A stretch of DNA of 64,000 nucleotides. Source: Macrostomum lignano. Its lineage: Eukaryota. A program made the translations under genes and the position numbers. Below, in pieces: positions 12,920 to 64,000 of this stretch. Under the pieces are notes generated by a model. That model searched no databases. It saw nothing but the letters and a program-made list of their open reading frames with translations, and had not been told where the DNA came from. The first letter of the stretch is position 1, and the number at the start of each line of letters is the position of its first letter. The stretch lies in NCBI GenBank assembly GCA_002269645.1, contig NIVC01000734.1, forward strand, positions 62,001 to 126,000. The letters are read 5' to 3'.

Positions 12920-14818
12920 TTTAACTAGCTAGCTAAGCCAAGCACTCACACTGTCTTTCTTCTTTTTATGAGCACTTCTTTCATTTAGTGGTACAGTACT
13001 TTAATGCTAGTGTCTATGGCCATTTTTGCTTTTAGCTTTGTACTTTATGCTATTCAACTGAGGGATACATATAATATTCCCCATTAATACTAGCCGAGGT
13101 CAATAAGTGAGGCACAAATGCATTTTTGCCCTAGCACTGGTATAAATGGGGAATATATACCATTTATATATACTATTTCTATTTATATTATAATAAACCA
13201 AATTTAATATATAAGATCATCTTCATAGGTTAGTTTCTGGATTATTGAAATTGATCACTAAAACCCTTTATACCTTTATACCTTTGGTTTTTTTATTTGC
13301 AATGTGAAGTGATAGTGTTATGATAGATAAATAAAAGGGATTAGATTAGAGTGCTTGTCAATTGTTGATTTGCATTTTGATAAAAAAACAACATTTTTGT
13401 CTTATCTCTTTCTCTCTAATGTGGTTTGTCATTAATTTCAATGATTATAAACCAAAGGAATGCCTAATGATTTATATGCATAAATAGAAAGATTTTTTTT
13501 TAGTTAAATTTGTCTAAAAAATATTTTGCCAATTTTTCCAAAAAAGTTATTATTTTAAACATAGTAATAACTGGCCTTGCTATTTTCTTATAAGATAATA
13601 CTAGGCTGTAAGCCAAACTTTTGATGCTCTTTAGCCACAAAAAAAGTAACTTTCCATTTTTAAGTGACTTGTTGAAACCATTTAATTGTACTCGTAGTTA
13701 TCACATTGCATCAAGACCTGGTCTTTGAAGTGAAATTGAAATAAAAAAATGTTGGTTGAAAAAGTAGAGTACATTTTTAATCTTTTTAGCCATTTTGTTT
13801 TTATAGCGGAAGAGTAATAGCATGTTTTGAAAAATGTTAAAAGAAAATGGAGGGGTAAGTGATGCATGTTTTGCATTCAATAAAAATATAACCTAGTTGT
13901 GAATATAAGTAAATTTTAATGATTGTTTGCCTAGAGAGAGTTTGAGTATTAGCCATTTGCACTTTTTCATTGAATTGTATACCATGAGATGGTGAATAAA
14001 TCAGCTGCATTGGTGTTAGATTCTCCTCTAACTGAGGAGTTGAACTTGTTATATCTATAGATCATCGAATATGAATTAATCCACTTTAGATTTGATAAGC
14101 TTCTAACCAATAAACAAATAGGCTTACTGAATCAGTCTTTTATGTTCTAGAATCTAGTTAGCACTATCTTGTGAAAAAGTGATGACTTGTCTAGTCCCAG
14201 TCACCAGTTGATGTTTAAATATATCATAAAGAGATGCCCCCAGTATCAGCAACTGGTATTGATCTTTGGTAGGATTTGACACTAGTGGTAAGTACTTAAT
14301 GTCCTATACTTACCATTTGTTACTTGCTTTACTCATATTCCTAGGCTTTAACAATTCTTCTGCTCAGGGCATATTGTCTCACTCATGGCTGGCAAATCTG
14401 CAAGGACATTTTGGTATTCACAAACAAATCAGTTTGATTTGCCTAGCTTATGTAATAGACTAGGATCTAGGTCAATGAAACAGACAGTTAGGCAACCAGA
14501 TGAAGGCTAACAGAAGCCAGTGTGTTCCCACACAGGTGTTGGGAATCGTTGATCCCAAATTGCACCCCACCTACCAATCTGGCTGTATTGTCGATCATTT
14601 TCCGAGTGCATCTAAAAATAGAATGCCAGAGCGCCGTTGAAAGTAAAGTGAAATCTGAATCTTTCCCCTTTAACCCTAATAGAAGAGATAGGCAGGCTCC
14701 CACGTTTTGCCATGGTAGATATAGATAAATGTGCACCTCTAAATGTACATTGTGAAATCTTTCCTATCCCTAGTCAATGTGCATTTCTTTCCTTCCAGTT
14801 CGACCCTACTATCAAGCA

Positions 14819-17496
14819 ATGCCTGGCGCTAAAAAGCAACAGCAGCAGCAGCAAGACTACAGTCAGTTAAAACTGACCGAATTGCGAGAGCTTTGTCACA
14901 ATCGCGGCATCAAAGTGTCCGGTAGGAAAAGCGAACTAATTGATCGATTAATTAATCTGGATTCGAACGGACACGATTCGAACAATAGTTCGAATACTAT
15001 TGCCGGGCATAGTAAGAAGAAGGCGGCAGCTGCAGCAGCAACAGATTCATTTGGCTTCAGCGTGGCTTACCGAGGCGCTCTGGTTGACTCCGGCGCCGGG
15101 GGCAGCGGCTCCGGCGGCTTTGACAGCTCATCAACGGCCACCATGGAAAACAACGATCATTTGTCTCGAACCGAGTCGCAGTTTCAACTACGCCAGCTGG
15201 CTAAAGAACGCGAACGAGCCGAACGGGATCGATTAGTACTGTGGCGCCGTCCATTTGCTACAGTTTACTATGCACTGTTGGAGTGCAATTTTCTATTGAC
15301 TAATTTGATTATACGGCTGTGGCATAACCGGCTGAGGGTAGGCCTAGTTGCTCTACTGCTCATGGCTCTGGCCGGTCTGAGACATGTTGAAGGTCCGCAT
15401 CGTCGGTATTTGGACATCGTCGAAGACACTGGACTGTGGTGCTCCTGGTGGATCTGGCTCGGGATCTTGTCTAGTGTCGGTTTAGGCACCGGCCTGCACA
15501 CGTTTCTCATCTATTTGGGCCCGCATATCGCCCGGGTTACACTGGCCGCTTACGAGTGTCGCACTTTGGACTTTCCTCAGCCGCCATATCCTGCCGAGAT
15601 TGGCTGTCCTAGCGAGACTGTGCCGGATACAGTGCTGGCGCCTTCTATATGGGCCATCTTGTCTAAGGTATATTCTACTGTCTTCTCAAATCCTCACAGA
15701 TCCTCTTCTGTCTTCTTAAATCCTCACAGATTCTCTTCTGCCTTCTCAAATCCTCACAGATCCTCTTCTGTCTTCTCAAATCCTCTCAGATCCTCTTCTG
15801 TCTTCTCAAATCCTCACAGATCCTCTTCTGCCTTCTCAAATCCTCACAGATCCTCTTCTGTCTTCTCAAATCCTCACAGATCCTCTTCTGTCTTCTCAAA
15901 TCCTCTCAGATCCTCTACTGCCTTCTCAAATCCTCACAGATCCTCTTCTGCCTTCTCAAATCCTCACATATCCTATCCTACCTTCTCAAATCCTCACAGA
16001 TCCTCAGGATAGGATCTGCCTTCTCTTAAATTCTTAATTTAGAAAGTGTTGGGATTTTAAATCAGTTGTGATCCCAACGCGATTACAAAAATCCGCAGGT
16101 CCGTCTCGAGGCGTTCAGCTGGGGCGCTGGCACAGCCATTGGCGAATTGCCGCCCTACTTTCTTGCCCGAGCTGCCCGACTGTCCGGCATGGATCCGGAC
16201 AGCGAAGAGCTGGACGAGTTAGAGGAGCTGCTGCACGAGCAGCGACATTTGGCCCGGTCGCCGGCTGCTAAAACCCAGTTGCCGTTTAGCACTCGAGTCA
16301 AGCTGCTTGTAAGCTGAACTGTGGTTGTTGTTAGTAAATTTGGGATTATTGATGAAGGGTAAAGACTTCAGGAGCATTGTCCTCCTCTGAGAATCTCCAT
16401 TCAGGACAAAGACTTCAGAACCCCCCCTTTTAAGAATATCCCTTCAGGACAATGACTTCAGAAACCCCCCTTTGAAAATCTCCCTTCAGGATAAAGACTT
16501 CAGGAACATTCGCCCCCCCCCCTTGAGAATCTCCCTTCAGAATAAAGACTTCAGGAACACGCCTCTGAGAATCTCCTTTCGGGATAAAGACTTCAGGAAC
16601 ATTGCCCTCTCCCCTTTGAGAATCTTCCTTCAGGATAAGGACTTCAGGAACATTGCCCACCTTTGAGAATCTCCCTTCAGGATAAAGTCTTCAGGAACAT
16701 TGCCCCCTCTGAGAATCTCCCTTTAGGATAAAGACTTCAGGAAAATGCCCCCTCTGAGAATCTCCCTTCAGGATAGAGTCTTCGGGAACATGCTCCCTCT
16801 CTGAGAATCTCCCTTCAGGATAAAGACTTCAGGAACATTGGCCCCTCTGAGAATCTCCTTTCATGATGCTTCATCTAGAAAATCGCCCTTAATGCAAATC
16901 TATATAACTTGTTAGATTTTAAGCATGCTTTGACCAATATCTTTATATACCTCAATCTCTAATCCCCGCAGGTGCACAACCTTGTTCAACGCCTCGGCTT
17001 CTGGGGCATCCTGCTATGCGCCTCGATCCCAAATCCTCTATTCGATCTAGCCGGCATCACATGCGGTCATTTTCTAATCCCATTTCAAACATTCTTCTTT
17101 GCCACCCTAATTGGCAAAGCTGTGATTAAAATGCACCTACAGATGCTATTTGTTGTGTTTGCATTCTCGCCGCATCTGGTTGAACGCTTGGCCACCTGGA
17201 TTGGCGGGGCGCCATTGTTTGGCCAGTTCATGGAGTCGCTGATTCGCGACCTGCTGGAGAAACAGCGTCGGTCGCTTCATCGTCCAGCTGGTGGAGAGGC
17301 CGCAGCTGCTGCGGCAGCCTCCAGCGGTAGCGCCGGTCGCAGCCTCCTACAGCAGGGCTTTGAGCTACTGGTTGCTGGCATGATTCTGTACTTTCTAGTG
17401 TCAATTGTAAACTCCTTTGCTCAGAGCTACTACAAACGGCAATACCATCGGGACAAGGCGGTACGGCGAGCTGAAGAGGCGGCTAAGTTCTACTGA
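14819..17496 (+). CDS. VMP1: Vacuole membrane protein 1 with N-terminal SAP domain; join(14819..15667,16099..16308,16972..17496), about 527 aa
   Basis: VMP1 motifs [46 protein letters not shown] and [21 protein letters not shown] phase-0 introns join in frame; AATAAA at about 17536. Confidence 0.93.
15678..16010. repeat. 30-bp minisatellite in VMP1 intron 1 (TCTTCTCAAATCCTCACAGATCCTCTTCTG)
   Basis: About 11 tandem units. Confidence 0.95.
16360..16860. repeat. About 43-45-bp minisatellite in VMP1 intron 2 (GAGAATCTCCCTTCAGGATAAAGACTTCAGGAACATTGCCCCCTCT-like)
   Basis: About 11 degenerate tandem units. Confidence 0.9.
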
Positions 17497-19465: not shown

Positions 19466-19810
19466 ATGAGCAATGCTTCGCCAATTACTCATTATCGACA
19501 TAGTCAGCTTCAAGGCCTGGCCTTGCTTCAATCGGAATCAGTAATTATCGTTGACAAACGGGAAGGCTATTCTTTCCCTACTAATAGTAAGCCTCGAGCA
19601 AAAGTAGAGGCATCAACAGGTAGAGAAAGTCGCTGCGTTGTTGTCAATGACGATCACCTGTTCCCAGACGCTGTAACTCCTAGCAAAGTTGATGTTAATC
19701 TGTGCGAAACCTACGACGTGCCGTATATGGACGATGATTGTTTCATACTGGACGAGTGTTGGTACATCACGGATGACAGCAGACTGACCTGCCTTCGCGG
19801 CGGAGAGTGA
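19466..19810 (+). CDS. Hypothetical 114-aa protein
   Basis: Non-repetitive ATG-to-stop ORF with more balanced GC than its AT-rich flanks; no recognised family. Confidence 0.3.
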   Translation: MSNASPITHYRHSQLQGLALLQSESVIIVDKREGYSFPTNSKPRAKVEASTGRESRCVVVNDDHLFPDAVTPSKVDVNLCETYDVPYMDDDCFILDECWYITDDSRLTCLRGGE

Positions 19811-21212: not shown

Positions 21213-22308
21213 GGGGCGTCGTGGTGGGCGCCCTTGTCTGTTGGTGGGCGCCCCTGTCTTTTGATTAGCGCCCCTGTCAGTTGGTGGGCGCCCCTGTCAC
21301 TTGGTGGGCGCCCCTGTCTATTAATGGGCGCCCCTGTCTCTTAATGGGCGCCTCTATTTCTTGGTGGGCGCCCCTATCACTTAATGGGCGCCCCTGTCTA
21401 TTAGTGGGCGCCCCTGTCTCTTGGTGAGCGCCCCTGTTTCTTGGTGGGCGCCCCTATCTCTTGGTGAGCGCCCCTGTCTCTTAGAGGGCGCCCCTGTCTA
21501 TTAATGGGCGCCCCTGTCTCTTAATAGGCGCCTCTGTCTCTTGGTGGGCGCCCCTATCTCTTGGTGGGCGCCCCTGTCTCTTGGTGGGCGCCCCTGTCTC
21601 TTGGTGGGCGCCCCTGTCTCTTAATCGGCGCCCCTGTCTCTTAATGGGTGCCTCTGTCTCTTGGTGGGCGCCCCTGTCTCTTAATGGGTACCCCTGTGTC
21701 TTGATGGGCGCCCCAGTCTATTAGTGGGCGCCCCTGTCTATTAATGGGCGCCCCTGTCTCTTAATAGGCGCCTCTGTCTCTTGGTGGGCGCCCCTATCTC
21801 TTGGTGGGCGCCCCTGTCTCTTGGTGGGCGCCCCTGTCTCTTGGTGGGCGCCCCTGTCTCTTAATCGGCGCCCCTGTCTCTTAATGGGTGCCTCTGTCTC
21901 TTGGTGGGCGCCCCTGTCTCTTAATGGGTACCCCTGTGTCTTGATGGGCGCCCCAGTCTATTAGTGGGCGCCCCTGTCTCTTACTGGGCGCCCCTGTCAC
22001 TTAATGGGCGCCCCTGTCTCTTGGTGGGAGCCCCTGTCTTTTGATTAGCGCCCCTGTCTCTTGGTGGGCGCCCCTGTCTCTTAATGGGCGCTCCTGTCTC
22101 TTAATGGGCGCCTCTGTTTCTTGGTGGGCGCCCCTATCACTTAATGGGAGCCCCTGTCTATTAGTGGGCGCCCCTGTGTCTTGGTGAGCGCCCCTGTCTC
22201 TTGGGTGGGCGCCCCTGTCTCTTGGTGAGCGCCCCTGTCTCTTGGGTGGGCGCCCCTGTCTCTTGGCGAACGCCCCTGTCTCTTGGTGAGCGCCCCTGTC
22301 TCTTGGTG
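21213..22308. repeat. 20-bp minisatellite (GGGCGCCCCTGTCTCTTGGT), array 1
   Basis: About 55 units; same family and orientation as 31786-32385. Confidence 0.95.
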
Positions 22309-22877
22309 GACTTTCTGACTCGATGTGCAATTACAACAGGGCTTCAAAAAGTGCTCTTATCGAAGTCAATTATATTATCGCTGTCTTAAGAAGCCTTAAA
22401 AGTAGGATAGATTCGATCTTCGAAAAAGCCGAAAAAGAATGCTTAATTACGATGGTTAATTACGCTCGTATTAAACCATCGGTGAAGGAAGTATCTTCCA
22501 GCGTATGAACATTGTATTTATCGAATAATAATTTGATATTTTGGGAACAGCGCTTGAAGCAATGATTTTACACTAAATTTGATAGTGTAATTATAGGTAA
22601 TTAATAGGCAATTATAGTGTTGACTCATTAAATATGAATAGTAGTTTGCAGTATTGGGTTTAAAAGTTGTTCTAGATAAATTTAGTGTATTAAATATTTA
22701 TGATTCATGTTCATATTGTGCACTTCTTTAAAAACAATTTGGTAAATAGTATAAGTTTTGTTTAACTATTTTGACTGTTTTCTTTAACTATTTTTAACTG
22801 TTTTGTTTAGCACGACACACTGTTCTGCATTTACTGCACTAAACGTTCCGATGATCCAGACAACCTTCGAGACCATC

Positions 22878-23627
22878 CTACAAACCGTCTCGGTGACCCC
22901 AACGACCGCCTCGACGACTCCAACGACTGCCTCGATGACCCCAACGACCGCCTCGACGACCCCAACGACCGCCTCGACGACCCCAACGACCGCCTCGACG
23001 ACCCCAGCGACTGCCTCGACGACCCCAACGACCGCCTCGACGACCCCAACGACCGCCTCGACGACCCCAACGACCGCCTCGACGACCCCAACGACCGACT
23101 CGACGACCCCAACGACCGCCTCGACGACCCCAACGACCGCCTCGACGACCCCAGCGACTGCCTCGACGACCCCAACGACCGCCTCGACGACCCCAACGAC
23201 CGCCTCGACGACCCCAACGACCGCCTCGACGACCCCAACGACCGCCTCGACGACCCCAACGACTGTTGCGTCCAGTCCACCGAACTCCGTAGAACCGTTC
23301 CCATCTCTTGCTGCCCGAACGTCCTCGAATCTTGCCACCAGAATGTCTCCAAACCTTGCCTTCGGAGTGCCCCCATCGGTCACCTGAATGATTACTCGAA
23401 TTGCTGCCTAATTTCGAATCTCTCAAGTCGCCTGTAGTAGGCTCGTCGTTGTCAACTGGAGTTTGAACCGTTGTTGGCGTTTTAGGCGTCGTTATTGTTG
23501 AGCTCACGCTTGTTGTCGTGGAGTCCGCAGTTTGGTTTTGAGATGTCAAATCGGTAGAGCAGCCTACACGTGCGTAGAGGCTCAGTAGAAACGGCAGACC
23601 AATTGTTAGCAGCAGCAAAGGGCGCAT
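22878..23627 (-). CDS. Secreted precursor with tandem xxRW-G-RR repeats; candidate RWamide neuropeptide prohormone (249 aa)
   Basis: Hydrophobic signal peptide MRPLLLLTIGLPFLLSLYARVGCS, a Ser/Thr-rich spacer, then 18 heptads of which 15 are xxRW-G-RR. Degenerate RW motifs continue in frame into the unique upstream sequence. Confidence 0.6.
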   Translation of the reverse strand: MRPLLLLTIGLPFLLSLYARVGCSTDLTSQNQTADSTTTSVSSTITTPKTPTTVQTPVDNDEPTTGDLRDSKLGSNSSNHSGDRWGHSEGKVWRHSGGKIRGRSGSKRWERFYGVRWTGRNSRWGRRGGRWGRRGGRWGRRGGRWGRRGGRWGRRGSRWGRRGGRWGRRGGRWGRRVGRWGRRGGRWGRRGGRWGRRGGRWGRRGSRWGRRGGRWGRRGGRWGRRGGRWGHRGSRWSRRGGRWGHRDGL

Positions 23628-24260
23628 GATCTGCGTCGGAGAAAGATTATAGAGCAGCTGGGATATTGAGTAGCCTTTGTATCTTAGGGATAAGAAAATC
23701 AGTACTCACATTGTCGCAGATTACAACCGATTGTCGGTCCTTTTAGTTAGCTATTTGACAAGATTTCAAAAGCACGGATTGTAGTAAGTAAGAGTTTGTT
23801 CTTCATGAAACTGCGCTGCCGCAGTCCTGAATCCTTTTAGGCGAAATGGCAGTTCAATGCCATAGACTATAAACTGTAAATCAAGGTACAGAACCTGTTG
23901 GCTTAGCTGATAGCTGGGAATAAAAATTGTCTACAATAAACGCATGGATGAATAATATAACTGGATCGCCAGAAGCTCGATTTTTTTGGTCCTAGCCATA
24001 GACAAGCACCAGCATCACAAGAAGCTCAGAATGCCGTACTTTCTACGCATTTTCACTTATCCTACTAAGTATAATTATAAATAAATGTGTGAAAGTTTGC
24101 GTTAAAAAGTTGTTATATAAAAAAGAGAGCTGGAAAAGCTCAGCTAAGAACTGAGCGAAAATATATGTAACTAGGCAGCTGCGAGCTGCAAATCCGACAA
24201 CCTCAGCCTCAGCCTCCGAAAGCCTCAGCTATAAGCTTATAACACTAACTAACTAATTAA

Positions 24261-31785: not shown

Positions 31786-32385
31786 TATCCCTGTCTCTTG
31801 GTGGGTGCCCCTGTCTCTTGGTGGGTGCCCCTGTCTCTTGGTGGGTGCCCCTGTCTCTTGGTGGGTGCCCCTGTCTCTTAGTGGACGCCCCTGTCTCTTG
31901 GTGGGCGTCCCTGTCTCTTGGTGGGTGCCCCTGTCTCTTGGTGGGCGCCCCTGTCTCTTGGTGGGTGCCCCTGTCTCTTAGTGGGCGCCCCTGTCTCTTG
32001 GTGGGCGTCCCTGTCTCTTAATGGGAACCCCTGTCTCTTGGTTGGCGCCCCTGTTTTTTAATTGGAGACCCTGTCTCTTGGAGGGCGCCCTTTTCTTTGA
32101 ATGGGCGCCCCCGTCTCCTAATGGGCGCCCCTGTCTCTTGGTGGGCGCCGCCTGTCTCTTAATGGGTTCTCTTGGTGGGCGTCCCTGTTTTTTTAATGGG
32201 AGCCCGGCCTGTCTCTTATAGGGCGCGTCTATCTCTTGGTGGGCGCCCCTGTCTCTTGGTGAGCACCCTTGTCTCTTGGTGAGCGCCCCTGTCTCTAATG
32301 GGCGCCCTTGTCTCTTGGTGGGCGCCCCCGTCTCTTGGTTGGCGCCCTTGTCTCTAAATGGCCGCCCCTGTCTCTTTGCAGGCGC
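31786..32385. repeat. 20-bp minisatellite (GGGCGCCCCTGTCTCTTGGT), array 2
   Basis: About 30 units just downstream of the glycine-rich gene. Confidence 0.93.
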
Positions 32386-33934: not shown

Positions 33935-41597
<7,663 letters not shown>

Positions 41598-50849: not shown

Positions 50850-53800
50850 GCTCTGGCACAATATCAGAGTTTGAGGTGAAACTCGCCAGTTATTGCTCAC
50901 TTTATTCATATATGGCCAAGTGAAATACTTTTAAATGTGGGTTTCGGCTCTCTGTCGAATCTGCGTCCGAATGCTCTAAGTTGAGGCAATAAGCGGCAAG
51001 TCCGACTCAGTGTTTTCCTGCGGTGTTATACCCTCTCTTATGATGTTACTCGTATATTTCAATCTAAGCCACTGATGACGATTCGCTGTATCGTCTATCG
51101 TTTTGATCTATTATATTAACTGATCGTTTTTCGTCGCTACTAAAAATATAATAAACTTGGCCAACTAAGCAAGAAAAAATATATCAGTTTAATTGCATAT
51201 TGGACTGTGCTACTACTTGCATTTTTCTGTTCTCTGTTTGGTCTTGTTCTGCCAAGGACTGCTACGCTGCGCCAGATTAAATTCGTCTCATTTAAATAAA
51301 GGTCTCACCGAGACACTGAATTAATTACGTTAACAATCCCAACAGGTTTATTACTGCATCTGGATTCTGCACTTCAAGGGCTACATCTACTCTACATTCT
51401 ACAATATTGGTTTGGCTATTATCGGAATTGACAACTGTTTAATTTGTCTTCTTCAACTGATTCTGCGATTGCATCTGTTCTACAGCTTGACATCAGGTCT
51501 ACACTAGGTCTAAAACTTGGCATAAGATCAATCAAATCTATTTCCAGGTAAGCCCCTTTTTGCCTGCTGCTAGGGACCGTCTGGCAGATTAGCCTTGCTT
51601 GTGGGTTGCATGCTTGTTCTAGAATTAGGATTTAGGCTATTTTTTTGGTTTTATTAATTTCTCTGCCAGAAATTTCTTTTTTTGTATTTGTGTGTGCTTT
51701 TCTATCTGCTTTCTTCATTTTCCTCTGCATCACTCTCTGTCTTGAGCATTATGTCAACTGAGGCTGGGGAGGAGGCTCTTGGTGCAGCTGATGATAGGGC
51801 TACACCAGCTCCAGGAGAAGTGAAATCTGGCGAATCAATGTCGGATTCACATGATTCACATGTGGGCCTAAATACAGATGAATCATCACATTCAACAAAC
51901 CTTTTACTTGCAAACACACTAGCTTCTCTGCACCGCATGCTAGAGGACCACTAAGTAGTAAAGGAGCAGCAAGGTCAACTGGATAGTGTCCAACATTGTG
52001 TTGCTCCTATGGCTAGTATGGTTCGGTTGTGGCCACCACCACCTTATTCAGCCAATATGAAGTTTGATGTTTGGGAAGCACAATTTTTGGCATACTAATT
52101 ATCTGCCCATCAGGTACCTCCCGAACAACAGTCAGCGATCTTACTTTCCCTCTTGTCGCCAGTGTCAAGAATGACCGTCTAGTATCTTATTCTCACTCAG
52201 CAGGCATGTCAGTAAACCAGGCTGAGCCGCTGCTAAAAGCCAGGTTCTGTCATGGGCTGCGAAACAAGGCATTGGCCGAGAGACTGATTCTGTGGAGTCA
52301 AGAAACACTTGGAGTCTCCTCAGCTGATCTAGTCCAAAAAGCTAAAGGTATGGTGGGGGTGCAGGAGTTGTTGCATCCATTTCCAGCACCAACAGCAGGT
52401 GCAACTGCTAACTTCCGATCAGTTGACCCAGTTAAGGATGCTTTAGAGGCCAGGGTAGCTGAACTTGAAAACATATTGCATCAACAGCAGCAGGTCAGGA
52501 GTCACCAACATGATAACCCACCGCCGACATTCCCAGCGGCCCTGACTTCAACCGCTGTAGGAATTGGTAATCCAGCTTTTGTCAGGCAGGTGAGCCAGCA
52601 ATCTAACCCTATGCAAAGCCAAAACCCCCATCTGCAAAGCCAAGAGCGTGCCACCGCTGCGGGAACACTGATCACCTGGTCGCTGACTGCCCATGTCCGC
52701 CAGCGAATCAGAACAGTGCCAGGGGGCCAAAAGTGGGCCAACATTCTATTAGTACCACATCAGAATTTGGGAGAATTGTTTCTTGGAATCAGAAATACGG
52801 GTTTATCCAGTTAGAACAACTACCAGAGAAGCTGTTTGTTCATCATAGCCAACTTTCGGGCTTGCTGCACCAACTTTCAGAGCACCGCCAGATCATTGGC
52901 ACTAGGGTGCAGTTCCAAAGTCAGGTTGCTTCAGGTCGTGAACATGACCAGGCCTGTTCTGTCACGCAGTGTCAGGATACTTCACAAGTGCAGTGTGGTC
53001 AGGTAAATCCAGTTGAGGACCAATCTTTCGAGTCTAGTTACTTTGTTCAGTTGGTAATCGGGGAGAGCCAACGCGAGTGTTATAAGCCAGCAGGTGATGG
53101 AGCGCCTTGTCTCTGCGAATCCAATTAATAATATCTTCACTTCAAGCCGAAAACATACTACTGCCGCAGCATTCAATGGCTCAACAACTCAGATACTGGG
53201 AGCGCTGAGGTGTGAAGTAACACTAGGGAAGCTAAGCAAGACTCATGTCTTCCTTGTCACCCAAGAGTCGACTGCAGAGGATCTGCTCGAAATCGACTTC
53301 CTTCGAAGTTTCCAGGTTGTGATTGACTTCACCGAAGGCAGAGCCCTTGTTGCAGGTGAAGCTGTCCCACTAGTTGAAGGGGACAAGGGTATCTTCCGTC
53401 TCCGCCGTGTGGTAGCTGGGTGCACCACAGAATTACCACCACAATCCGAAACTTTAGTACCAAGTTGGGTTTTAGACAATGCTCCAAATTTTCAAGGAAT
53501 CATTCAATGCAAAATCTTCAACACCGACACCGAGTGCCTAGTAGCCCGCTCTGTCAACATGTCAAACCAGTCAAACCATGTGCTGGTCCGATTACTTAAC
53601 AGTAGTGACCGGCTAACCAAGATTGAGCGAGGACAGGAAAAAGTATCGTTCCAGGAACTAGGTCAAGACACGGTAGTAGTACAAACAACACTCAATGAAC
53701 AAGACTTCTCTATTGACAACGTTGACAATTTAAATAGCAAGATAGCTAAACTACTACATCCAGATCGGGGTACTACAGCATGGTTAACAAAAAAATTTTC

Positions 53801-54275
53801 GCTTAGACCAGGCAAAACTCACAACAAAGCAGCTGGGTCAAACTCTCCGGTTATTGAATTATTTTATGGGACAAATCTCAGAGCGGAACTGATCTGGGGC
53901 GAACTCGTCTTTACGAGATGCCTATTGAGCTCTCCTATGACCGGGTTAGTGAGACTCCATCGAGTTCGAGATCGTCGGTGACTGTGCCGTCAGATGCTCT
54001 ACCCCAATTGCCCATCGACGGTGAAGCCGCTCCAGTTGCCGTCCAGGAGGAAGAGGAGGCGGGGTCGGCAAGCGCTCAGACTGGTGAGGAACCAGATGGT
54101 GAGGAAAGTCTTGGCGCTGGTACGGAACCAGATACTACCGAATCGCCGATGGCCGAAACCCCCCCCCCCGAATCCTGTCACGTCGCATGATCAGGCGGAT
54201 AGTGAGTCAGCGGCGTCTCCAGAACCTGAGAACCAGGTCTGGGAGGGTGGTGCGCCAACCGAGTCGGTTCAGGGT
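50850..54275 (+). mobile_element. Degenerate, internally deleted Ty3/Gypsy-like retroelement (left arm of palindrome)
   Basis: Gag-like helical region (LLKARFCHGLRNKALAERL); CCHC knuckle CHRCGNTDHLVADC (52649-52690); cold-shock domain (52769-52963); aspartic protease lacking its DxG motif (..EDLLEIDFL); PR-RT spacer; integrase-end-like SPVIELFYGTNLR; terminal RSGRVVRQPSRF (54226-54270). RT, RNase H and integrase core are missing. Confidence 0.75.
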
Positions 54276-54478: not shown

Positions 54479-55361
54479 ATGTCGAAATTACCCACTTATC
54501 GAAAATCGGCGGGCTCAACTGAGCCACCTAGCAAGCGCGCAAGCAATCGTCAGTCCTCGGACTGGACTACTAAAAGTAGTGCTGCTGGCGGATCCTCTAC
54601 GGCCATATCCAATGGTAGAGGCACAACAAGCCGTACGTCAGTGCCCCCGGCCCAAAGACGGCGCTCGTCCGCTGGTCCATCCAGCAAAACAACGCCACCC
54701 ATTGCACCATGCACATTAACACCAGGGTCGGACCACTCGTCGGCACCGAACTCTCCTGTGCTCACCAATCCAGCCGATAGCGTACAACCGGAGGTTATTG
54801 AAATTCCGGCTGACTCTGACTCTAGAGGTACCAACACGGTCCTTGAGGAGCCGGACCAGGTCACTGAGGACCCAGGCGCTGCAGAATCGGACGCTTCCAA
54901 CAGTAACGACGCTGCTGATGATGTCGATGCGGACTCAGTGAGGTACCTCCAGAGCCCCATCGGCTTCCCTGTGCACCCGGACCGAACCGGGGAAAATATC
55001 CAGCGCTACGGCGACGTACTTGAGTACTATCCGAAGCTACTTGAATCTGTATCCAAACAGCTCTATGACCGCCTAATAGCTGACCTATTGCCAAAGGCCG
55101 TCAGGCATCGGCCGCATGAGCAACGTAGGGTGGTATGGTACGGCCCCAGCTACTCGTACTCGGGCGTACCATTAGAGCCCAACCAAAAGTGGCACCCGGC
55201 TGTCGAGGACCTGCGAGATTTCCTGGAGATCAACGCGGACCTCGGCATGCCAAAGTTTAATTCGTGCCTTATAAATTTCTACGAATCAGCGGATGATAAT
55301 ATCCCGTACCACGCCGACAATGAGCCCGAGCTTGGCACCGATCCGTACATCGCCACAGTGT
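54479..55361 (+). CDS. AlkB-family (ALKBH2/3-like) 2OG-Fe(II) dioxygenase, C-terminally truncated, with long low-complexity N-terminus
   Basis: RRVVWYG.SYSYSG, FNSCLINFY and HADNE (HxD at 55310-55318), then IATVS; truncated by the right palindrome arm before the distal His and Arg motifs. Confidence 0.8.
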
Positions 55362-58300
55362 CGGGGGGGGGGTTTCGGCCATCGGCGATTCGGTAGTATC
55401 TGGCTCCGTACCAGCGCCAAGACTTTCCTCACCATCTGGTTCCTCACCAGTCTGAGCGCTTGCCGACCCCGCCTCCTCTTCCTCCTGGACGGCAACTGGA
55501 GCGGCTTCACCGTCGATGGGCAATTGGGGTAGAGCATCTGACGGCACAGTCACCGACGATCTCGAACTCGATGGAGTCTCACTAACCCGGTCATAGGAGA
55601 GCTCAATAGGCATCTCGTAAAGACGAGTTCGCCCCAGATCAGTTCCGCTCTGAGATTTGTCCCATAAAATAATTCAATAACCGGAGAGTTTGACCCAGCT
55701 GCTTTGTTGTGAGTTTTGCCTGGTCTAAGCGAAAATTTTTTTGTTAACCATGCTGTAGTACCCCGATCTGGATGTAGTAGTTTAGCTATCTTGCTATTTA
55801 AATTGTCAACGTTGTCAATAGAGAAGTCTTGTTCATTGAGTGTTGTTTGTACTACTACCGTGTCTTGACCTAGTTCCTGGAACGATACTTTTTCCTGTCC
55901 TCGCTCAATCTTGGTTAGCCGGTCACTACTGTTAAGTAATCGGACCAGCACATGGTTTGACTGGTTTGACATGTCGACAGAGCGGGCTACTAGGCACTCG
56001 GTGTCGGTGTTGAAGATTTTGCATTGAATGATTCCTTGAAAATTTGGAGCATTGTCTAAAACCCAACTTGGTACTAAAGTTTCGGATTGTGGTGGTAATT
56101 CTGTGGTGCACCCAGCTACCACACGGCGGAGACGGAAGATACCCTTGTCCCCTTCAACTAGTGGGACAGCTTCACCTGCAACAAGGGCTCTGCCTTCGGT
56201 GAAGTCAATCACAACCTGGAAACTTCGAAGGAAGTCGATTTCGAGCAGATCCTCTGCAGTCGACTCTTGGGTGACAAGGAAGACATGAGTCTTGCTTAGC
56301 TTCCCTAGTGTTACTTCACACCTCAGCGCTCCCAGTATCTGAGTTGTTGAGCCATTGAATGCTGCGGCAGTAGTATGTTTTCGGCTTGAAGTGAAGATAT
56401 TATTAATTGGATTCGCAGAGACAAGGCGCTCCATCACCTGCTGGCTTATAACACTCGCGTTGGCTCTCCCCGATTACCAACTGAACAAAGTAACTAGACT
56501 CGAAAGATTGGTCCTCAACTGGATTTACCTGACCACACTGCACTTGTGAAGTATCCTGACACTGCGTGACAGAACAGGCCTGGTCATGTTCACGACCTGG
56601 AGCAACCTGACTTTGGAACTGCACCCTAGTGCCAATGATCTGGCGGTGCTCTGCCAGTTGGTGCAGCAAGCCCGAAAGTTGGCTATGATGAACAAACAGC
56701 TTCTCTGGTAGTTGTTCTAACTGGATAAACCCGTATTTCTGATTCCAAGAAACAATTCTCCAAAATTCTGATGTGGTACTAATAGAATGTTGGCCCACTT
56801 TTGGCCCCCTGGCACTGTTCTAATTCGCTGGCGGACATGGGCAGTCAGCGACCAGGTGATCAGTGTTCCCGCAGCGATGGCACGCTCTTGGCTTTGCAGA
56901 TGGGGGTTTTGGCTTTGCATAGGGTTAGATTGCTGGCTCACCTGCCTGACAAAAGCTGGATTACCAATTCCTACAGCGGTTGAAGTCAGGGCCGCTGGGA
57001 ATGTCGGCGGTGGGTTATCATGTTGGTGACTCCTGACCTGCTGCTGTTGATGCAATATGTTTTCAAGTTCAGCTACCCTGGCCTCTAAAGCATCCTTAAC
57101 TGGGTCAACTGATCGGAAGTTAGCAGTTGCACCTGCTGTTGGTGCTGGAAATGGATGCAACAACTCCTGCACCCCCACCATACCTTTAGCTTTTTGGACT
57201 AGATCAGCTGAGGAGACTCCAAGTGTTTCTTGACTCCACAGAATCAGTCTCTCGGCCAATGCCTTGTTTCGCAGCCCATGACAGAACCTGGCTTTTAGCA
57301 GCGGCTCAGCCTGGTTTACTGACATGCCTGCTGAGTGAGAATAAGATACTAGACAGTCATAGAAGTCTAAGATAGTCTCTGTACTATTTTGGACGGCTGC
57401 TATAAGCTCCATATAACTTTTCTGTTGAAGGTTAACATCAGTATAGCGGTTGCGCAGTGCCTAAAGCGCCTTTGAACATGCATTTTTATCAAGCTCATTA
57501 TTGAGGAAAAATTCTTAACACTGGCGACAAGAGGGAAAGTAAAGATGACTGACTGTTGTTCAGGAGGTACCTGATGGGCAGATAATTAGTATGCCAAAAA
57601 TTGTGCTTCCCAAACATCAAACTTCATATTGGCTGAATAAGGTGGTGGTGGCCACAACCGAACCATACTAGCCTTGCTGCTCCTTTACTGCTTAGTGATC
57701 CTCTAGCATGCGGTGCAGAGAAGCTAGTGTGTTTGCAAGTAAGAGGTTTGTTGAATGTGATGATTCATCTGTATTTAGGCCCACATATGAATCATGTGAA
57801 TCCGACATTGATTCGCCAGATTTCACTTCTCCTGGAGCTCGTGTGGCCCTATCATCAGCTGCACCAAGAGCCTCCTCCCCAGCCTCAGTTGACATAATGC
57901 TCAAGACAGAGTGATGCAGAGGAAAATGAAGAAAGCAGATAGAAAAGCACACACAAATACAAAAAAAGAAATTTCTGGCAGAGAAATTAAGAAAACCAAA
58001 AAAATAGCCTAAATCCTACTTCTAGAACAAGCATGCAACCCACAAGCAAGGCTAATCTGCCAGACGGTCCCTAGTAGCAGGCAAAAAGGGGCTTACCTGG
58101 AAATAGATTTGATTGATCTTATGCCAAGTTGTAGACCTAGGTGCCAAGCTGTAGGCCTAGTGTAGACCTGGATGCCAAGCTGTAGAACAGATGCAATCGC
58201 AGACTCAGTTAAAGAAGACAAATTAAACAGTTGTCAATTCCGATAATAGCCAAACCAATATTGTAGAATGTAGAGCAGATGTAGCCCTTGAAGTGCAGAA

Positions 58301-58821
58301 TCCAGATGCAATAATAAACCAGTTGGGATTGTTAACGTAATTAATTCAGTGTCTCGGTGAGACCTTTTTTTAAATGAGACGAATTTAATCTGGCGCAGCG
58401 TAGCAGTCCTTGGCAGAACAAGACCAAACAGAGAACAGAAAAATGCAAGTAGTAGCGCAGTCCAATATGCAATTAAACTGATATATTTTTTCTTGCTTAG
58501 TTGGCCAAGTTTATTATACGAAGTATTTTTTAGTAGCGACGAAAAACGATCAGTTAATATAATAGATCAAAACGATAGATGATACAGCGAATTGTCATCA
58601 GTGGCTTAGATTGAAATATACGAGTAACATCATAAGAGAGGGTATAACACCGCAGGAAAACACTGAGTCGGGCTTGCCGCTTATTGCCTCAGCTTAGAGC
58701 ATTCGGACGCAGATTCGACAGAGAGCCGAAACCCACATTTAAAAGTATTTCACTTGGCCATATGAATAAAGCGAGCAATAACTGGTGAGTTTCACCTCAA
58801 ACTCTGAGATTGTGCAAGAGC
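55361..58821 (-). mobile_element. Second copy of the degenerate Gypsy-like element (right arm of palindrome)
   Basis: Near-identical reverse complement of 50850-54171 with the same frameshifts, plus arm-specific indels. Confidence 0.8.
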
Positions 58822-59112
58822 ACGAACTCAAGATATATTCCGAACGCATTAAAAACAAGCGAAGCTAGACTCACCAAAATCCTTATGGACGAAGTTTTTC
58901 CAAAGGCCTTTCATCAGGTATCCGGCGGCAAACCTGAAGCTAGGAAGGTAGTGTGGTACGGTCCAGAGTACACCTACGGTGGCACAACGATTGAGGCCAA
59001 CGATGCTTGGCACCCCGTAGTGACTCACTTAGCTTCCTGGCTGCACGTTGAGCTTAAGCTTCTATTGCCAAACTCGTGCCTGATCAACTTCTACAAGGAT
59101 AGCACAGTTTCG
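58822..59112 (+). pseudogene. Second AlkB-like fragment (paralogous to 54479-55361), lacking HxD
   Basis: ARKVVWYGPEYTYGG..WHPVV..PNSCLINFYKDSTVS; fused in frame to the downstream LINE sequence. Confidence 0.7.
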
Positions 59113-62100
59113 GCGGCACAAATACGGCGAGACCCCACAACCGAAGTCACCAAGGCGCCCAGGCCAAGAGCGGAGAGCCAGTCAAGAGTAAGAAAGGACG
59201 AGGACAAAGACGATATCGAGACAGGCAGGAGCGACAGCCCTGATAGCAGCAGCGAGGAAGCGCCGCCGGAACCGACGCTGGGAATCAGAGAGAGCCACCC
59301 CAGGAGCAGAAGGCCGGAGAACTCACCACTACACCCGCGAGGTAAAGATCAGCGAGACCCCGCCCTCCGCAACCGAGGGGCTGAATCAAGCTCCCGGGAA
59401 GAGGACACGCTGACCAGAGCACCCCCCACGGAGGAGGAGCCGGAAAGCGGCCCCAGCGAGAACACCACGGGTCGGCAGCTAGGAGAGGCGAGCAAGCGCA
59501 CAGCACCAGCCCGGAAGGCCCCCAGGTTGTGGACCACCCAGGAGGACAAAGTGGCGGAGAAGGACGCTTCCAATCCGACGCGCGGAAAAGAGAAAGGCTC
59601 CACAGAAGCGTGCCGCCAGTGTCACAGGAAAATACGCAGCGACCATAGAGGGCTACAGTGCCTGGGCTGCGGGTCGGTCAGCCACCGTGCATGCACCGGC
59701 CTTACCAGATTGCGGCGCGAGCAGCTGATCAGCTGGACCTGCCAAAACTGCTGCAGAAGCAGTACCGGTAAGGCGGAATATCAGGCCTCCAAGCCCAGCG
59801 GGACGCCACAGAGTGCAGAGAACAGCAGGCAGAAGGCGGGTCGGTGCGCCATCTGCCAGAAGCACAGGCGGAAGGGCCAAGGCACGGAGTGCAGCGGCTG
59901 CGCTAAGAAAATCCTCCGGCTCCGGCGCTCATACGAGGAAGCAACGAGACAAAATAAAGCACCTCGGATGGACCTGCGTCGAATTTCAGCAGCAGCCCAA
60001 AACGGGCAACAGCCATAAGCCGGAGCAGAAGGAGCAGGACACCAGGGACATAGAATAAGAAGCCCACAGGGCAGAGGACGCGAAACTCTCCTTTCTGCAA
60101 TGGAACTGCGATCATGTGAGGGCCAAAAAACCGGAACTAAGAGACTTCCTCCAACGTCACCACATTGACGCCGCGATGATTCAAGAAACCAAACTTCGCA
60201 GCGAAGACGGAGTTATTTCTATACCCGGCTACACCGCAATCAGAAAAGACCGAACGCGCACGGACGCTGATTAAAGAAGGCATCAGGTACGAAAAGGTCG
60301 AGCTCATTCAACGAACCGACGGAGAACACCTAGAACTACTCTGCGTAAAAGTCTTCCCTCCAGGACAGACGGAAGCCATTGGCCTGGCCAACGTGTACAT
60401 ACCACCTCAATCTTCGTCCCCGTTGAACCACAGAGAGCTCCACAATCTCCCCAGCGGAAACAACTGGATCATTGCCGGCGAACTCAATGCGCACCACGAG
60501 CTCTGGGACAACAACTGCCCCAGAGACTCCAGAGGGGAGGCATTCGTTGAATGGATGGACGACCACCTGTTCACGGCGCTCAACGACGGAGAGGCCACGC
60601 GAAACAGCAGAGATGGGAAATCGAGCACAGCACCAGACATCACAATGGTCCCAGCGGCCGACAGTCACCTCTGGAGCTGGACAGTGCAGAAAGAAATGAG
60701 CTCCGATCATCTGCCGATCATAATCCGGAGAGCGGGTACAGAAACAGAGGCGGCGGCAGAAAGAAAAGTGATATGCTGGAACTGGAGGAAGGCAAACTGG
60801 GAAAAATACCGAGAGGCGGTGGCTAACACGTTGACAGAACCAGGTCGGAGGCAAGATACCATCGAGCAGGAAGAAGGCAGAATCAAGCGGGCAATTCAGG
60901 AAGCAGCGCGGAAGCACGTCGGCACCATCGCCAGGAAAACACGTAACATAGATTTCGTCGAAGAGGACATCCTGGAAATGATGGAGAAGAAAGACAATGT
61001 CCGCGCGGCAGAAGGTATCAAATCGGAAGCCTGGAAATGGAAGGCCCTGGACCAAGAGATCAAGACAACCATGGCGGACCGCAAAAAAAGAACAATGGAG
61101 GCACCACCTGGACAAACATGCGAGCAACAGCAAGATGTGGACGCTGGTCAGCCAGTTAAGCAGAGCCAGGGCAAAAAGAGAGGAAGATCAAATCATGGAA
61201 CACGAGGGAAGGAAGTACAAATCGGACAGAGCGAAGGCGAACATCATCGCTAAAACATACGCTAAGGTCAGTACCTACCAAATAAAAGCAAACCACCGCT
61301 GGGCAAAAAAGCAAGCTAACGCAAGGCCCGGGATCCTGGAATGGCAACAGCCAAAGCCCGCGGACGACGAGGAGATCTCAGCGGAAGAGATTAGAGAGGC
61401 GCTAGATAAGACGGACAGCAACAGGGCGGCAGGCATGGATCACATCCACCCAAGCTGCTCAAGGAGCTGCCGAAGGCAGCCCTGGAAGAAGTCCGGAATC
61501 TGTTCATCTGTTCCGGAGCAAGCCTACGCACCATCGAACTGGCGAATGGCCCGCATTATCCCGCTGCTCAAAAAGGGAAAACCGGCCAGCGAAATAGGAT
61601 CGTACAGACCGGTAAGCCTGACCTCGTGCCTGGGCAAGCTGATGGAACGCGTGTTGGCAGCCAGAATCAGATCCACGCTCGAAGCCAACGGAACACTCAG
61701 CGACAACTAAGCGGGTTTCCGAGCAGGTCGGTCAGCCGAGGACCAGGTGCTCCGCCTCACCCAAGCCATTGACGATGCCTTCCAGAACAGAGAAAAAACC
61801 ATCCTGGCCCTGTTCCACTTCGAAAGGGCCTTCGACAAAGTGTGGAGAGACGGGCTCATCATTAAGCTGCTCAACACGGGTATCGGAGTCAAGCTTATTC
61901 TCTGGATCCAGGCCTTGCTGATGGACCGCAAAGCATGCGCCAGAGTAGGCAACGTCGATAGCAGGCGCGAAAGATTTCGGCAGGGTCTCCCGCAAGGATC
62001 CGTGCTATCTCCCCTGCTCTTTATTATCTACATCAACGACCTCCTCAAAAAACAGGAAAATATCGAAGGGCTAGAAGTCAGCGGCTACGCTGACGACCTA

Positions 62101-63850
62101 GCCACCTGGTCTTGCAACAGATCGCCAGATGTTGCGCTCGAAAGGCAGCAGCTAGCCACCAAGACAATCCAAGACTGGAGCGAAAAGTGGCTGATGCCGA
62201 TCTCAGTGCCCAAATGCACGCTCACCATCTTCAGCAACGACCCGGCCACGACGATACCTGCCGGGAAGGTCAAACTGAACAACCAGGAGATCCGGTGGGA
62301 AGAGCACCCTAAATTCCTGGGCCTCACGTATGACAGGAAGCTCAGTTTCAGCAAGCACGCGGAGACGGTAGTGACTAGCTGCAGGAAGAACCTAAACTTA
62401 CTCCGTAAACTAGCCGGTAGCGACTGGGGATGGCAACCGGAACTGGTACGTGACACCTACAAAGCCACAATCCGCAGCAACATCACGTACGGAGCTTGTG
62501 CTTGGACGCCTTGGATTTCCGCCCCAATTTGGCGGAGGCTCGAGGTGCTACAAAGGGAAGCTCAAAGAATCATCACCGGAGCGACGGACACAACACCGGT
62601 GGAAGCCCTGCGCTGAGAGAGCCAGCTGCAAGACCTCAAACCGCTGTGCACGGTTATCTGGGGCACCAAGCTCGACCGCTGGCTCCGACTGCCAGAGAAA
62701 TCCCGGAGGTACAAGACCGCAACCAAAAATGTACCGACAAGACTGAAGCGGATCGGTTGGCGCAAGGCAGCCCAGGAGGCGCTGAGGGAAGCCGGGTTCC
62801 TCGATCTGCCGAGAATCAAGGACGAGGAGGACGCCACACCCTGGAGCGGATGGCGTAAGGCCCTCATCGACGCCGAGGCAGACAGGCAAATAACGATGGA
62901 AGGCAACAAGTGCATGGCCAAGAGAAGGCTCCATGCCAACTGCCCGAAACCGGACTACACACTGTACACCAACGGCTTGGTCAAAAACGGCAGAGGAAGA
63001 AGCGGAGTGGCGATTTTCACCGGCGAAGCGGAGAAGGAGCCTCCGATCCAAACCATCGCCAGACCGGCGGGGACATCGCCTCCTCGTTACAAGCGGAGCT
63101 CGGGGCCCTGGCGGCGGCCCTAGAGTGGCTAGAGAGCAGGCAGGACTGGCAAACGGCCCAAATTGCCTCGGATAGCAAGAGCGGACTCCTGGCCATCAAA
63201 GGCTACGGCAGAAACCCCGTGGCGATCAACACCCGGAAGACGCTCGCGAAGATGATCAGCAGAGACAAGCAGCTTGCGCTGACATGGATACCAGCGCACT
63301 GCGGCCATCCCGGAAACGAGGCCGCCGACATCATAGCAGGCAACGCGACGGAGCTCGCCCAAGGTCAGACGCCGGTGCTAGCCAGCCTGGTCCAAGCACG
63401 CCTAGCAGCCAAAATGGCCAAAAAGCAAGGAAAAGACCGGCAGTGGGCTCACGTCCGAAGCAAGAACACCTACGGCACCGTCAGGTCTGCGCGCCACCCA
63501 CAGTTCAAGTCCCGGACCGAGGCGGTCAGCTTCTGTCTTTTTCGGACGGGCCACTCGCTGGAGCTCGAAGCCTATCAACTAAGGTTGAAAAAGGACACCG
63601 ACGGGCTCTGCTGGGAGTGTGGCCTGGAAGAAGAGACGGTGGTCCACGTCATCGAAGAGTGCCCCGCCACCGAGCTAGCCAGAAGGCAATACGGGCTCTT
63701 GCTTATGACGCACACGAACGAGCTACCCGAGCCGATCCTGAGCTACTGGAACTGGTACAGGTGCCGCCCCAAATGGAAGGAGAAGCTCGACGAGGTGTTA
63801 AATACGGCTCAGCTATAACAACAACAACAACAACAGCAACAGCAGCAGCA
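59113..63850 (+). mobile_element. Degenerate RNase H-bearing non-LTR retrotransposon (Ingi/I-superfamily-like): PHD-PHD-APE-RT-RNase H-CCHC, probably 5'-truncated
   Basis: PHD CRQC..CLGC..SHRAC..WTCQNC; APE FLQWNCD, IQETK, IAGELNAHH, SDHLP; RT QGSVLSP and YADD; RNase H AELGAL, SDSKS, WIPAHCGHPGNEAAD; zinc finger CWEC..ETVVHVIEEC. Stop codon runs into a (CAA)n(CAG)n tail at 63817-63856. Several in-frame stops (60056, 61708, 62614) and frameshifts. Confidence 0.9.
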
Positions 63851-63926
63851 GCAGCACAGCCCCCACACCTCCTCGCGGTGTGCTGTGGACACCCGCCCTC
63901 TCCCTGGGCTGGTGACGAAGGGGGGG
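63851..63926 (+). ncRNA. HDV-like self-cleaving ribozyme at the 5' end of a downstream Ingi-like element
   Basis: P1 GCAGCAC(63851-57)/GTGCTGT(63880-86) with G.U at the cleavage site; P3 ACC/GGT with L3 TCCTCGC; P1.1 CC/GG(63887-88); P4 CACC-GCCC/GGGC-GGTG; J4/2 A-C(63916)-GAA; P2 CCCCCAC/GGGGGGG with one mismatch. Confidence 0.88.
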
Positions 63927-63933
63927 CATACCT

Positions 63934-64000
63934 ATGGACTACTGCTGGGACTGCAAGAAGTGGAAGCTGATCAAAGCCGGAGACGTCGAGAGCAACCCGG
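63934..64000 (+). CDS. Start of LINE ORF with a 2A/StopGo peptide (MDYCWDCKKWKLIKAGDVESNPG...), cut by the window edge
   Basis: Exact D-V-E-S-N-P-G motif in frame with an ATG 8 nt after the ribozyme; the final Pro codon lies outside the window. Confidence 0.8.
   Translation, partial: MDYCWDCKKWKLIKAGDVESNP

Follow-up and report, generated by a model that had tools for sequence, protein, structure and literature searches.

A 249-amino-acid open reading frame (ORF) in the genome of the flatworm Macrostomum lignano raises the question whether a real gene, perhaps a multi-copy precursor of small amidated peptides, lies there, or whether a tandem repeat merely happens to read like one. The ORF lies on the minus strand of a stretch of 64,000 nucleotides (positions 62,001 to 126,000 of the forward strand of contig NIVC01000734.1, GenBank assembly GCA_002269645.1), which is called the window below. 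It occupies window positions 22878..23627 (ATG 23627-23625, TAG 22880-22878), that is, NIVC01000734.1:84878-85627, the record coordinate being the window coordinate plus 62,000. A preliminary description of this DNA had reported a signal-peptide-like start, a Ser/Thr-rich spacer and a run of xxRW-G-RR heptads, and had proposed a precursor of a new neuropeptide, GGRW-amide. These parts were found again, with identical counts. We tentatively favour the reading that minisatellite expansion in a transcribed orphan locus produced the ORF as a by-product, which would at most be a newborn and unconstrained proto-gene, and we hold this first choice with somewhat less than even confidence. In a rough likelihood tally, a real translated gene comes out about as probable as not. 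The tally sets the rarity of the signal peptide, the intron signal and the locus-specific annotation on the one side against codon usage, the frame of the annotation, the lack of relatives and the repeat-derived spacer on the other.

Read from its ATG, the ORF consists of five parts, all on the minus strand. The signal-peptide-like N-terminus (amino acids 1-23, MRPLLLLTIGLPFLLSLYARVGC; 23559..23627) has a predicted cleavage site after VGC (VGC|S). It is followed by a Thr/Ser/Pro-rich spacer (amino acids 24-82; 23382..23558), delimited by the ORF translation and by DNA alignment, and by decayed direct units (amino acids 83-120; 23268..23381), recognized by DNA alignment to the tandem consensus. 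Then comes the 18-unit minisatellite of 21 bp (22890..23267), whose consensus GGCGGTCGTTGGGGTCGTCGA reads GGRWGRR, and finally a C-terminal tail, DGL and the stop codon, adjoining the last heptad (22878..22889). The 18 heptads comprise 11 GGRWGRR, two GSRWGRR, one VGRWGRR and one NSRWGRR, followed by GGRWGHR, GSRWSRR and GGRWGHR. Thus xxRW-G-RR is present in 15 of the 18, and among these 15 the amino-acid variation is confined to peptide positions 1-2, RWGRR being invariant. The array contains 52 Arg, 48 Gly and 18 Trp in 129 residues and is free of acidic spacers; the predicted mature protein has a net charge of +55 and an isoelectric point (pI) of 12, with no Cys after residue 23 of the ORF. 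By its composition, the protein of this frame is low-complexity and disordered.

Tandem Repeats Finder (TRF) detects 18.1 tandem copies of a 21-bp unit at 22884-23263, with 94% matches, and a search with the consensus finds 18 units at 22890-23267, where 0 are expected by chance; 11 of the 18 are identical at the DNA level. Minisatellites are recognized by head-to-tail units of 10-60 bp with high identity, by copy-number variation and by degenerate edges. The 21-bp array shows all of these, with decayed units on its 5′ side and imperfect units on its 3′ side. The array is open in all six frames: on the minus strand it reads GGRWGRR, AVVGVVE or RSLGSSR, and on the plus strand STTPTTA (a mucin-like heptad), RRPQRPP or DDPNDRL. 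Because all six frames are open across it, the open array is not evidence for a gene. Of random 21-mers with the same base composition, about 69% have no stop in any of the six frames, and in random stop-free 21-mers of this composition an open frame contains Gly-dibasic in 8% of cases and hydrophobic-Gly-dibasic in 2%. Since a single 21-mer was amplified, the 15 apparent cleavage and amidation sites are one observation, not 15.

Repeats of this kind abound around the ORF. Simple and tandem repeats make up 15% of the M. lignano genome (PMC5730564). The window itself gives 76 TRF rows, with minisatellites of 14-35 bp period, and several of its other arrays yield ORFs of 200-446 amino acids, one of them with a signal-peptide-like start.

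The same locus is found on a second contig, NIVC01000491.1, as an intact ORF of 256 amino acids with 19 units and one non-synonymous change, R to S. The two genomic copies are 99.7% identical, with 5 substitutions and 2 indels between them over 2.1 kb, and one of the indels is a 21-bp unit. The difference between 18 and 19 units indicates copy-number instability of the minisatellite; because the differences are so few, a selection (dN/dS) test between the copies has no power. A search for further paralogous contigs by means of a neighbouring annotated gene of 114 amino acids returned only the same contig.

In the preliminary description, older diverged RW motifs (GDRWG, SKRWE and GVRWT) ahead of the array had been taken to support the GGRW frame. 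The motifs are indeed there, and at the DNA level they align to the 21-mer as degenerate copies, within five decayed units that read GDRWGHSE, GKVWRHS, GGKIRGRS, GSKRWERFY and GVRWTGR. Their support for the frame is weak, as all three minus frames are open through most of this zone. The Gly-dibasic signal is not kept in the decayed units, where GHS, RHS, GRS, ERF and TGR are found instead. The lengths of the indels between decayed units had also been considered as a test of frame conservation, which was dropped because the DNA alignment is too ambiguous for indel counts.

The Thr-rich spacer may have the same origin. About 66 nt of it can be aligned with the reverse-complemented 21-mer (TTPTTAS in the plus-strand reading), as some three decayed units. 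The local score of this alignment is 16 (dinucleotide-shuffle P=0.0075), a value reached by 0 of 108 genomic control segments, and a seed-based search for inverted repeats between spacer and array gave no match. The signal, modest but significant, suggests that the spacer is built of inverted decayed 21-mer units. If so, stalk and array would be one satellite read on opposite strands, which suggests an ORF assembled from repeat DNA and not an old gene.

Codon usage provides further clues. A codon model was derived from ten exon blocks of the VMP1 and VCP genes in the window (1,251 codons). In leave-one-out tests, the true frame of every exon block gave values from +0.10 to +0.64 bits per codon, and both of its wrong frames gave negative ones. 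The 120 unique codons of the ORF score -0.15, compared with -0.02 +/- 0.16 for chance open segments (19th percentile), and their G+C content at third codon positions is 0.49, compared with 0.53-0.81 in the exons. With amino-acid composition removed, these codons have a synonymous-only score of -0.10; none as low occurred among 20,000 bootstrap replicates of the exons (0.24 +/- 0.07), and the score sits inside the chance-open distribution (-0.23 +/- 0.22). The Thr codons of the ORF are mostly ACA and ACG, whereas the exons favour ACT and ACC (P=0.006). The codon usage of the unique part thus looks non-coding; we grade this evidence as moderate, not decisive, because the model rests on two housekeeping genes.

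The ORF also stands alone in the databases. The full-length sequence has no homologue among about 5.8 billion protein clusters, and its N-terminal 127 amino acids gave no significant word match in the same set, which includes the NCBI and UniProt proteomes of M. lignano; these proteomes did return the neighbouring VMP1. Other Macrostomum species are apparently absent from the searched databases, which limits this negative result. In an exhaustive HMMER search of 1.84 billion representatives, the repeat part alone matches, and the matches examined are either unrelated ORFs across heptad minisatellites or, by the motif only, genuine W-amide precursors. The search for orthologues in related species that the preliminary description had proposed thus found neither a conserved precursor nor a conserved peptide in these databases. 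Pfam returns a single sub-threshold match to New_glue (amino acids 1-66, 20.8 bits against a cutoff of 31 bits), which does not amount to membership. Rfam and tRNA scans of the window found no RNA genes, and in the papers searched there was no mention of this repeat or of a Macrostomum RW-amide. A degenerate codon-level scan of metagenomes for RWGRRGGRWGRR produced one match, which lies in a bacterial gene of high GC and is coincidental. It would seem that the ORF is not backed by a conserved GGRW-amide neuropeptide system.

GenBank annotates the locus, but in a different frame. A single-exon coding sequence of 181 amino acids (22831..23376, minus strand; GCA_002269645.1, NIVC01000734.1) covers the same repeat on the same strand in the RSLGSSR frame, and the 188-amino-acid product annotated on NIVC01000491.1 likewise uses this frame. 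The genomic ORF is continuous from the signal-peptide region through the array, whereas the annotation begins at 23376. An exact look-up of the GGRW-frame product found it not on record. The annotation of M. lignano is RNA-seq-derived, from StringTie/TACO transcripts with TBONE cutting and TransDecoder ORFs. An annotated gene of 114 amino acids (19466-19810, plus strand), located between VMP1 and the candidate, has no Pfam match on record and lies in an open segment of chance-like kind; TransDecoder probably called it on a transcript that is non-coding or read-through. Its presence indicates that an annotated coding sequence in this assembly is evidence of transcription and not of coding.

On the by-product reading, the history of the locus may be outlined as follows. 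The locus would be a young, copy-number-variable 21-bp minisatellite, whose unit is stop-free in six frames, one of which chances to read GGRW-G-RR. Replication slippage or unequal exchange would have amplified this single 21-mer to 18-19 copies, the amplification itself being visible in the identity of the units, the decayed flanks and the 18 versus 19 copies. The adjoining sequence, built in part from decayed units, direct and apparently also inverted, would stay open up to an ATG that begins a hydrophobic, signal-peptide-like stretch.

Several observations weigh against a mere by-product. First, upstream of the array the GGRW frame alone stays open: it reaches its stop at 23708 only after 147 codons, and the remaining minus frames end earlier, at 23382 and 23410. 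Such a stretch is open in 11 of 20,000 local-composition shuffles, although long open runs are empirically commoner here than this simple null predicts, since 7 unmasked segments of the window are open for 147 codons or more. Second, the W is kept in frame in 4 decayed units although the units are 21-27 nt long. Third, the N-terminus (MRPLLLLTIGLPFLLSLYARVGC|S) has the features of a signal peptide by a heuristic (not SignalP): a basic n-region, a 15-residue hydrophobic core with a best 12-residue hydropathy of 2.6, and a -3/-1 motif. Only 15 of 2,094 shuffled ATG-ORFs (0.7%) have these features, which are therefore rare by chance; within the real window, one further ORF shows them and is an artefact of an AGAC repeat. 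Fourth, the start codon is the first in-frame ATG past a stop and has A at -3. Fifth, a putative 79-nt intron in the 5′ untranslated region (23631..23709, minus strand) ends 3 nt short of the ATG and has a consensus pair of donor and acceptor sites. Sixth, at least 7 arrays lie within 20.5 kb (12831-33376), and the 21-bp candidate array is the only one with an annotated coding sequence; with an RNA-seq-derived annotation, this argues for locus-specific transcription. Finally, a codon model made from two housekeeping genes may misfit a tissue-specific, low-complexity secreted protein.

The putative intron is suggested by its match to the splice consensus of the species and to junctions in the window. 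M. lignano uses a GT[G/A]AG donor and a CAG acceptor (PMC8629364). Here the donor would be AAT|GTGAGT (23709-23704; GT at 23709-23708) and the acceptor CCGACGCAG|ATCATG (AG at 23632-23631), which also resembles the sites that end real introns of VMP1 and VCP in the window (...C(C)GCAG|G). The in-frame upstream stop (23708-23706) falls within the putative donor, and if the intron were excised, the sequence would still read an in-frame TAA a few codons 5′ of the junction, with no intervening ATG. Two internal splice donors had been named earlier as a possible route by which the repeat might be spliced out (23378..23396, minus strand). Compared with the species consensus and the VCP donor, one of them, A|GTAATC (GT at 23395-23394), is donor-like, cf. 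the real VCP donor AG|GTAATT. The other, CAG|GTGACC (23386-23378), fits the consensus better as an acceptor (TTCAG|GTGACC, CAG at 23386-23384).

The rival explanation that survives best, though we consider it unlikely, is that the ORF encodes a true precursor from which many copies of small amidated peptides are cut, to be released from neurons or gland cells. Dibasic cleavage and amidation through a C-terminal Gly are established steps of peptide processing, and tetrapeptide amides such as FMRFamide and APGWamide derive from multi-copy precursors. The protein would enter the secretory pathway, a prohormone convertase would cut after Arg-Arg, a carboxypeptidase would trim the Arg residues, and peptidylglycine alpha-amidating monooxygenase (PAM) would amidate via the Gly. 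Each molecule would then yield 11-12 GGRW-NH2, 2 GSRW-NH2 and 1 VGRW-NH2. This is consistent with the heuristically predicted signal peptide, with the intron-like signal 5′ of the ATG and with the 15 xxRW-G-RR units that vary at the first two peptide positions only, although amplification reduces these units to one motif observation. Moreover, Gly-dibasic, which is expected to be the selected part, is the part lost in the decayed units. The lack of acidic spacers with a charge of +55 and a pI of 12, the absence of a homologue in the flatworm and other proteomes searched (with other Macrostomum species not in the databases), the non-coding-like codon usage and the annotation in another frame also speak against a precursor. 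Release from neurons, which would make the product a neuropeptide proper, is more doubtful still.

Precedents for such an architecture exist among spiralians. Protein RUS77409.1 of Elysia chlorotica, also a spiralian, has a signal peptide, a Ser/Pro-rich spacer and heptads made of a tetrapeptide ending in W, Gly and a dibasic site, with 17 APGW-G-KR units, many of them directly back-to-back; its architecture matches that of the candidate. This public 'hypothetical protein' is evidently an unannotated APGWamide precursor. It differs from the candidate in having APGW instead of GGRW, blocks of 3-5 units parted by acidic spacers, a Cys-containing C-terminal peptide, and no near-identical DNA minisatellite. 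The BLASTP alignment of the two rests only on the periodic W-G-basic-basic pattern, and because the similarity is confined to this periodicity, no homology to the APGWamide precursor is shown. The candidate has no APGW units, no acidic spacers, no C-terminal Cys peptide and no homology beyond the motif, and so lacks what marks this family.

Other short W-amides are more distant. The cnidarian Antho-RWamides are short peptides with an RW-amide end (pGlu-S/G-L-RW-NH2), and the RGWamide of Platynereis is a short peptide ending in GW-amide. Both have other N-terminal residues and no sequence relation to the GGRW units.

The name 'GGRWamide' is already in use for a nemertean neuropeptide (MS peptide 4) found by mass spectrometry (Thiel et al. 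2021, PMC8557429). It is a spiralian peptide too, and shares with the candidate the hexapeptide GGRW-G-R and a predicted C-terminal GGRW-amide. However, the nemertean peptides are of about 30 residues with two Cys (..CVLK..YVMC..DGGRW-G-R-S), are released by monobasic cleavage, and occur in a handful of copies with long spacers. Spacers are lacking in the candidate, as is any Cys beyond residue 23. In spiralian CCK/sulfakinin-type peptides, C-terminal GGRF/Y/W-amide is also found, for example in brachiopod ..DDYGFAGGRW-G-R and in the oyster peptide FDYNFGGGRWamide (PMC4200219). These peptides of 10-16 residues require a D-Y (sulfotyrosine) core and come in 1-2 copies per precursor, whereas the DY motif is present in none of the candidate's units. 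GGRW-amide C-termini are thus known in nemertean, brachiopod and oyster peptides, a precedent that favours the precursor reading.

Finally, the candidate resembles translated minisatellites. The best matches of the exhaustive search are of this kind (GGRWTVD, GNRWPVM, AAGRWPL and GGRYGRK repeats), and ORFs are predicted across 21-bp arrays in many genomes. It differs from them in that, among the matches examined, only genuine W-amide precursors pair a signal-peptide-like start with a hydrophobic-Gly-dibasic unit. From all the peptide families compared, the candidate is set apart by its lack of acidic spacers, its near-identical DNA minisatellite and its lack of relatives. Judged by its sequence, it is built like a short W-amide precursor and is a member of none of these families. 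In the original proposal of a neuropeptide precursor, the motif grammar holds and has its spiralian precedent; a functional status in this frame does not follow, since the tests with homologues, codon usage, genomic copies and annotation were negative or uninformative.

A further alternative, which we likewise judge unlikely, is a lineage-specific secreted protein that remains largely intact, with an O-glycosylated Thr/Ser-rich stalk and a polycationic Arg/Gly/Trp domain of 126 residues. An uncleaved cationic protein had already been named as an alternative in the preliminary description, and we rate its likelihood and that of the neuropeptide reading as similar. Peptides rich in Arg and Trp act on membranes, and cation-pi pairs are a driving force of adhesion under water and of coacervation. 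A gland-cell product of this kind could be antimicrobial, adhesive, coacervating, or associated with mucus or eggs, acting via its charge and cation-pi interactions. The signal-peptide-like start, the mucin-like spacer with its sub-threshold New_glue match and the Arg/Gly/Trp-rich array uninterrupted by acidic spacers are all consistent with this. The negatives on coding status, namely the lack of relatives and the codon usage, apply here as well, and the 18 exposed Arg-Arg sites would be hard to shield from the convertases of the secretory pathway. No relative is known from the adhesive and prostate gene sets of M. lignano, with no sequence-level search made of those sets.

It is also conceivable, though improbable, that a peptide gene is being born here from a minisatellite. 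The signal-peptide start, the Thr stalk of inverted units and the fresh array would then together make a Macrostomum-specific precursor that releases about 15 copies of GGRW-amide.

Least probable is that another frame gives the real product, either the annotated RSLGSSR (181 amino acids, 22831-23376) or AVVGVVE, the latter in frame with a spliced-leader ATG if trans-splicing uses the CAG at 23386-23384: RSLGSSR is annotated on both contigs, TTCAG|G looks like [T/C]TNCAG, the acceptor motif for trans-splicing, and the spliced-leader sequence ends in ATG, but neither frame has a signal peptide, domain or homologue, RSLGSSR scores worst of the three array frames in the codon model (-0.55), TransDecoder ORFs of at least 100 amino acids arise automatically on a repeat open in all frames, and the neighbouring 114-amino-acid 'gene' is equally without support.

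The surroundings of the candidate show what minisatellites do to conserved genes in this genome. The neighbouring ORF 14777-16012 belongs to a SAP-domain VMP1 gene, 98% identical to M. lignano BOX15_Mlig014031g1; exons of CDC48/VCP lie on the minus strand at 35.3-41.5 kb, and retroelements at 52-64 kb. The introns of VMP1 (14807-17493) and CDC48/VCP (35341-41528) consist largely of minisatellite, examples being 15674-16005, 16356-16867, 36557-37159, 37525-38032, 38600-39264 and 39959-40551. Because the introns are filled in this way, several conserved exons of the two genes run into long repeat-encoded open frames. The frame of CDC48/VCP is broken at about 37417 (37370-37470, minus strand), where GAATTCCCGACAAGTTCGCC is short of one base of the Pro codon in ...YPVEFP|..., so that the frame changes between the conserved halves of VCP. 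Either the long-read assembly has a homopolymer indel here or the gene is a frameshifted paralogue. A 20-bp satellite, TGGTGGGCGCCCCTGTCTCT, forms two arrays 9.5 kb apart (21222-22309 and 31789-32376), one of which adjoins the candidate locus; satellites in the M. lignano genome are dispersed families.

Farther along the window, there is a perfect inverted duplication of 1,998 nt (52171-54168 and 55363-57360, 100% complementary), with outer arms at 51735-51974 and 57672-57911. The duplication bears retroelement gag/protease-like ORFs, and the 1.2-kb core that it flanks carries an ORF for an AlkB-like 2OG-Fe(II) oxygenase (54479-55396). It is perhaps a true palindromic element, perhaps an artefact of assembly. 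A non-LTR retrotransposon region follows at 58810-63970, with reverse transcriptase and RNase H-like ORFs. The ORF that precedes these (58810-60018) encodes a PHD finger and a second AlkB-like fragment that resembles 54479-55396.

If the GGRW frame is not translated, the locus is a cautionary case, in which a 21-bp array open in all six frames mimics prohormone grammar very well, and automated annotation has already given it a different and equally unsupported protein. If it is translated and processed, GGRW-NH2 would be a new amidated peptide in the sparse neuropeptide catalogue of a tractable flatworm. The locus would then hold the first multi-copy RW-amide precursor in Platyhelminthes, with a product that converges on the C-terminus shared by nemertean GGRWamide and spiralian CCK/sulfakinin-type peptides. 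In that case a minisatellite would have given rise to a multi-copy peptide precursor in a single step, a point of interest for the origins of such precursors.

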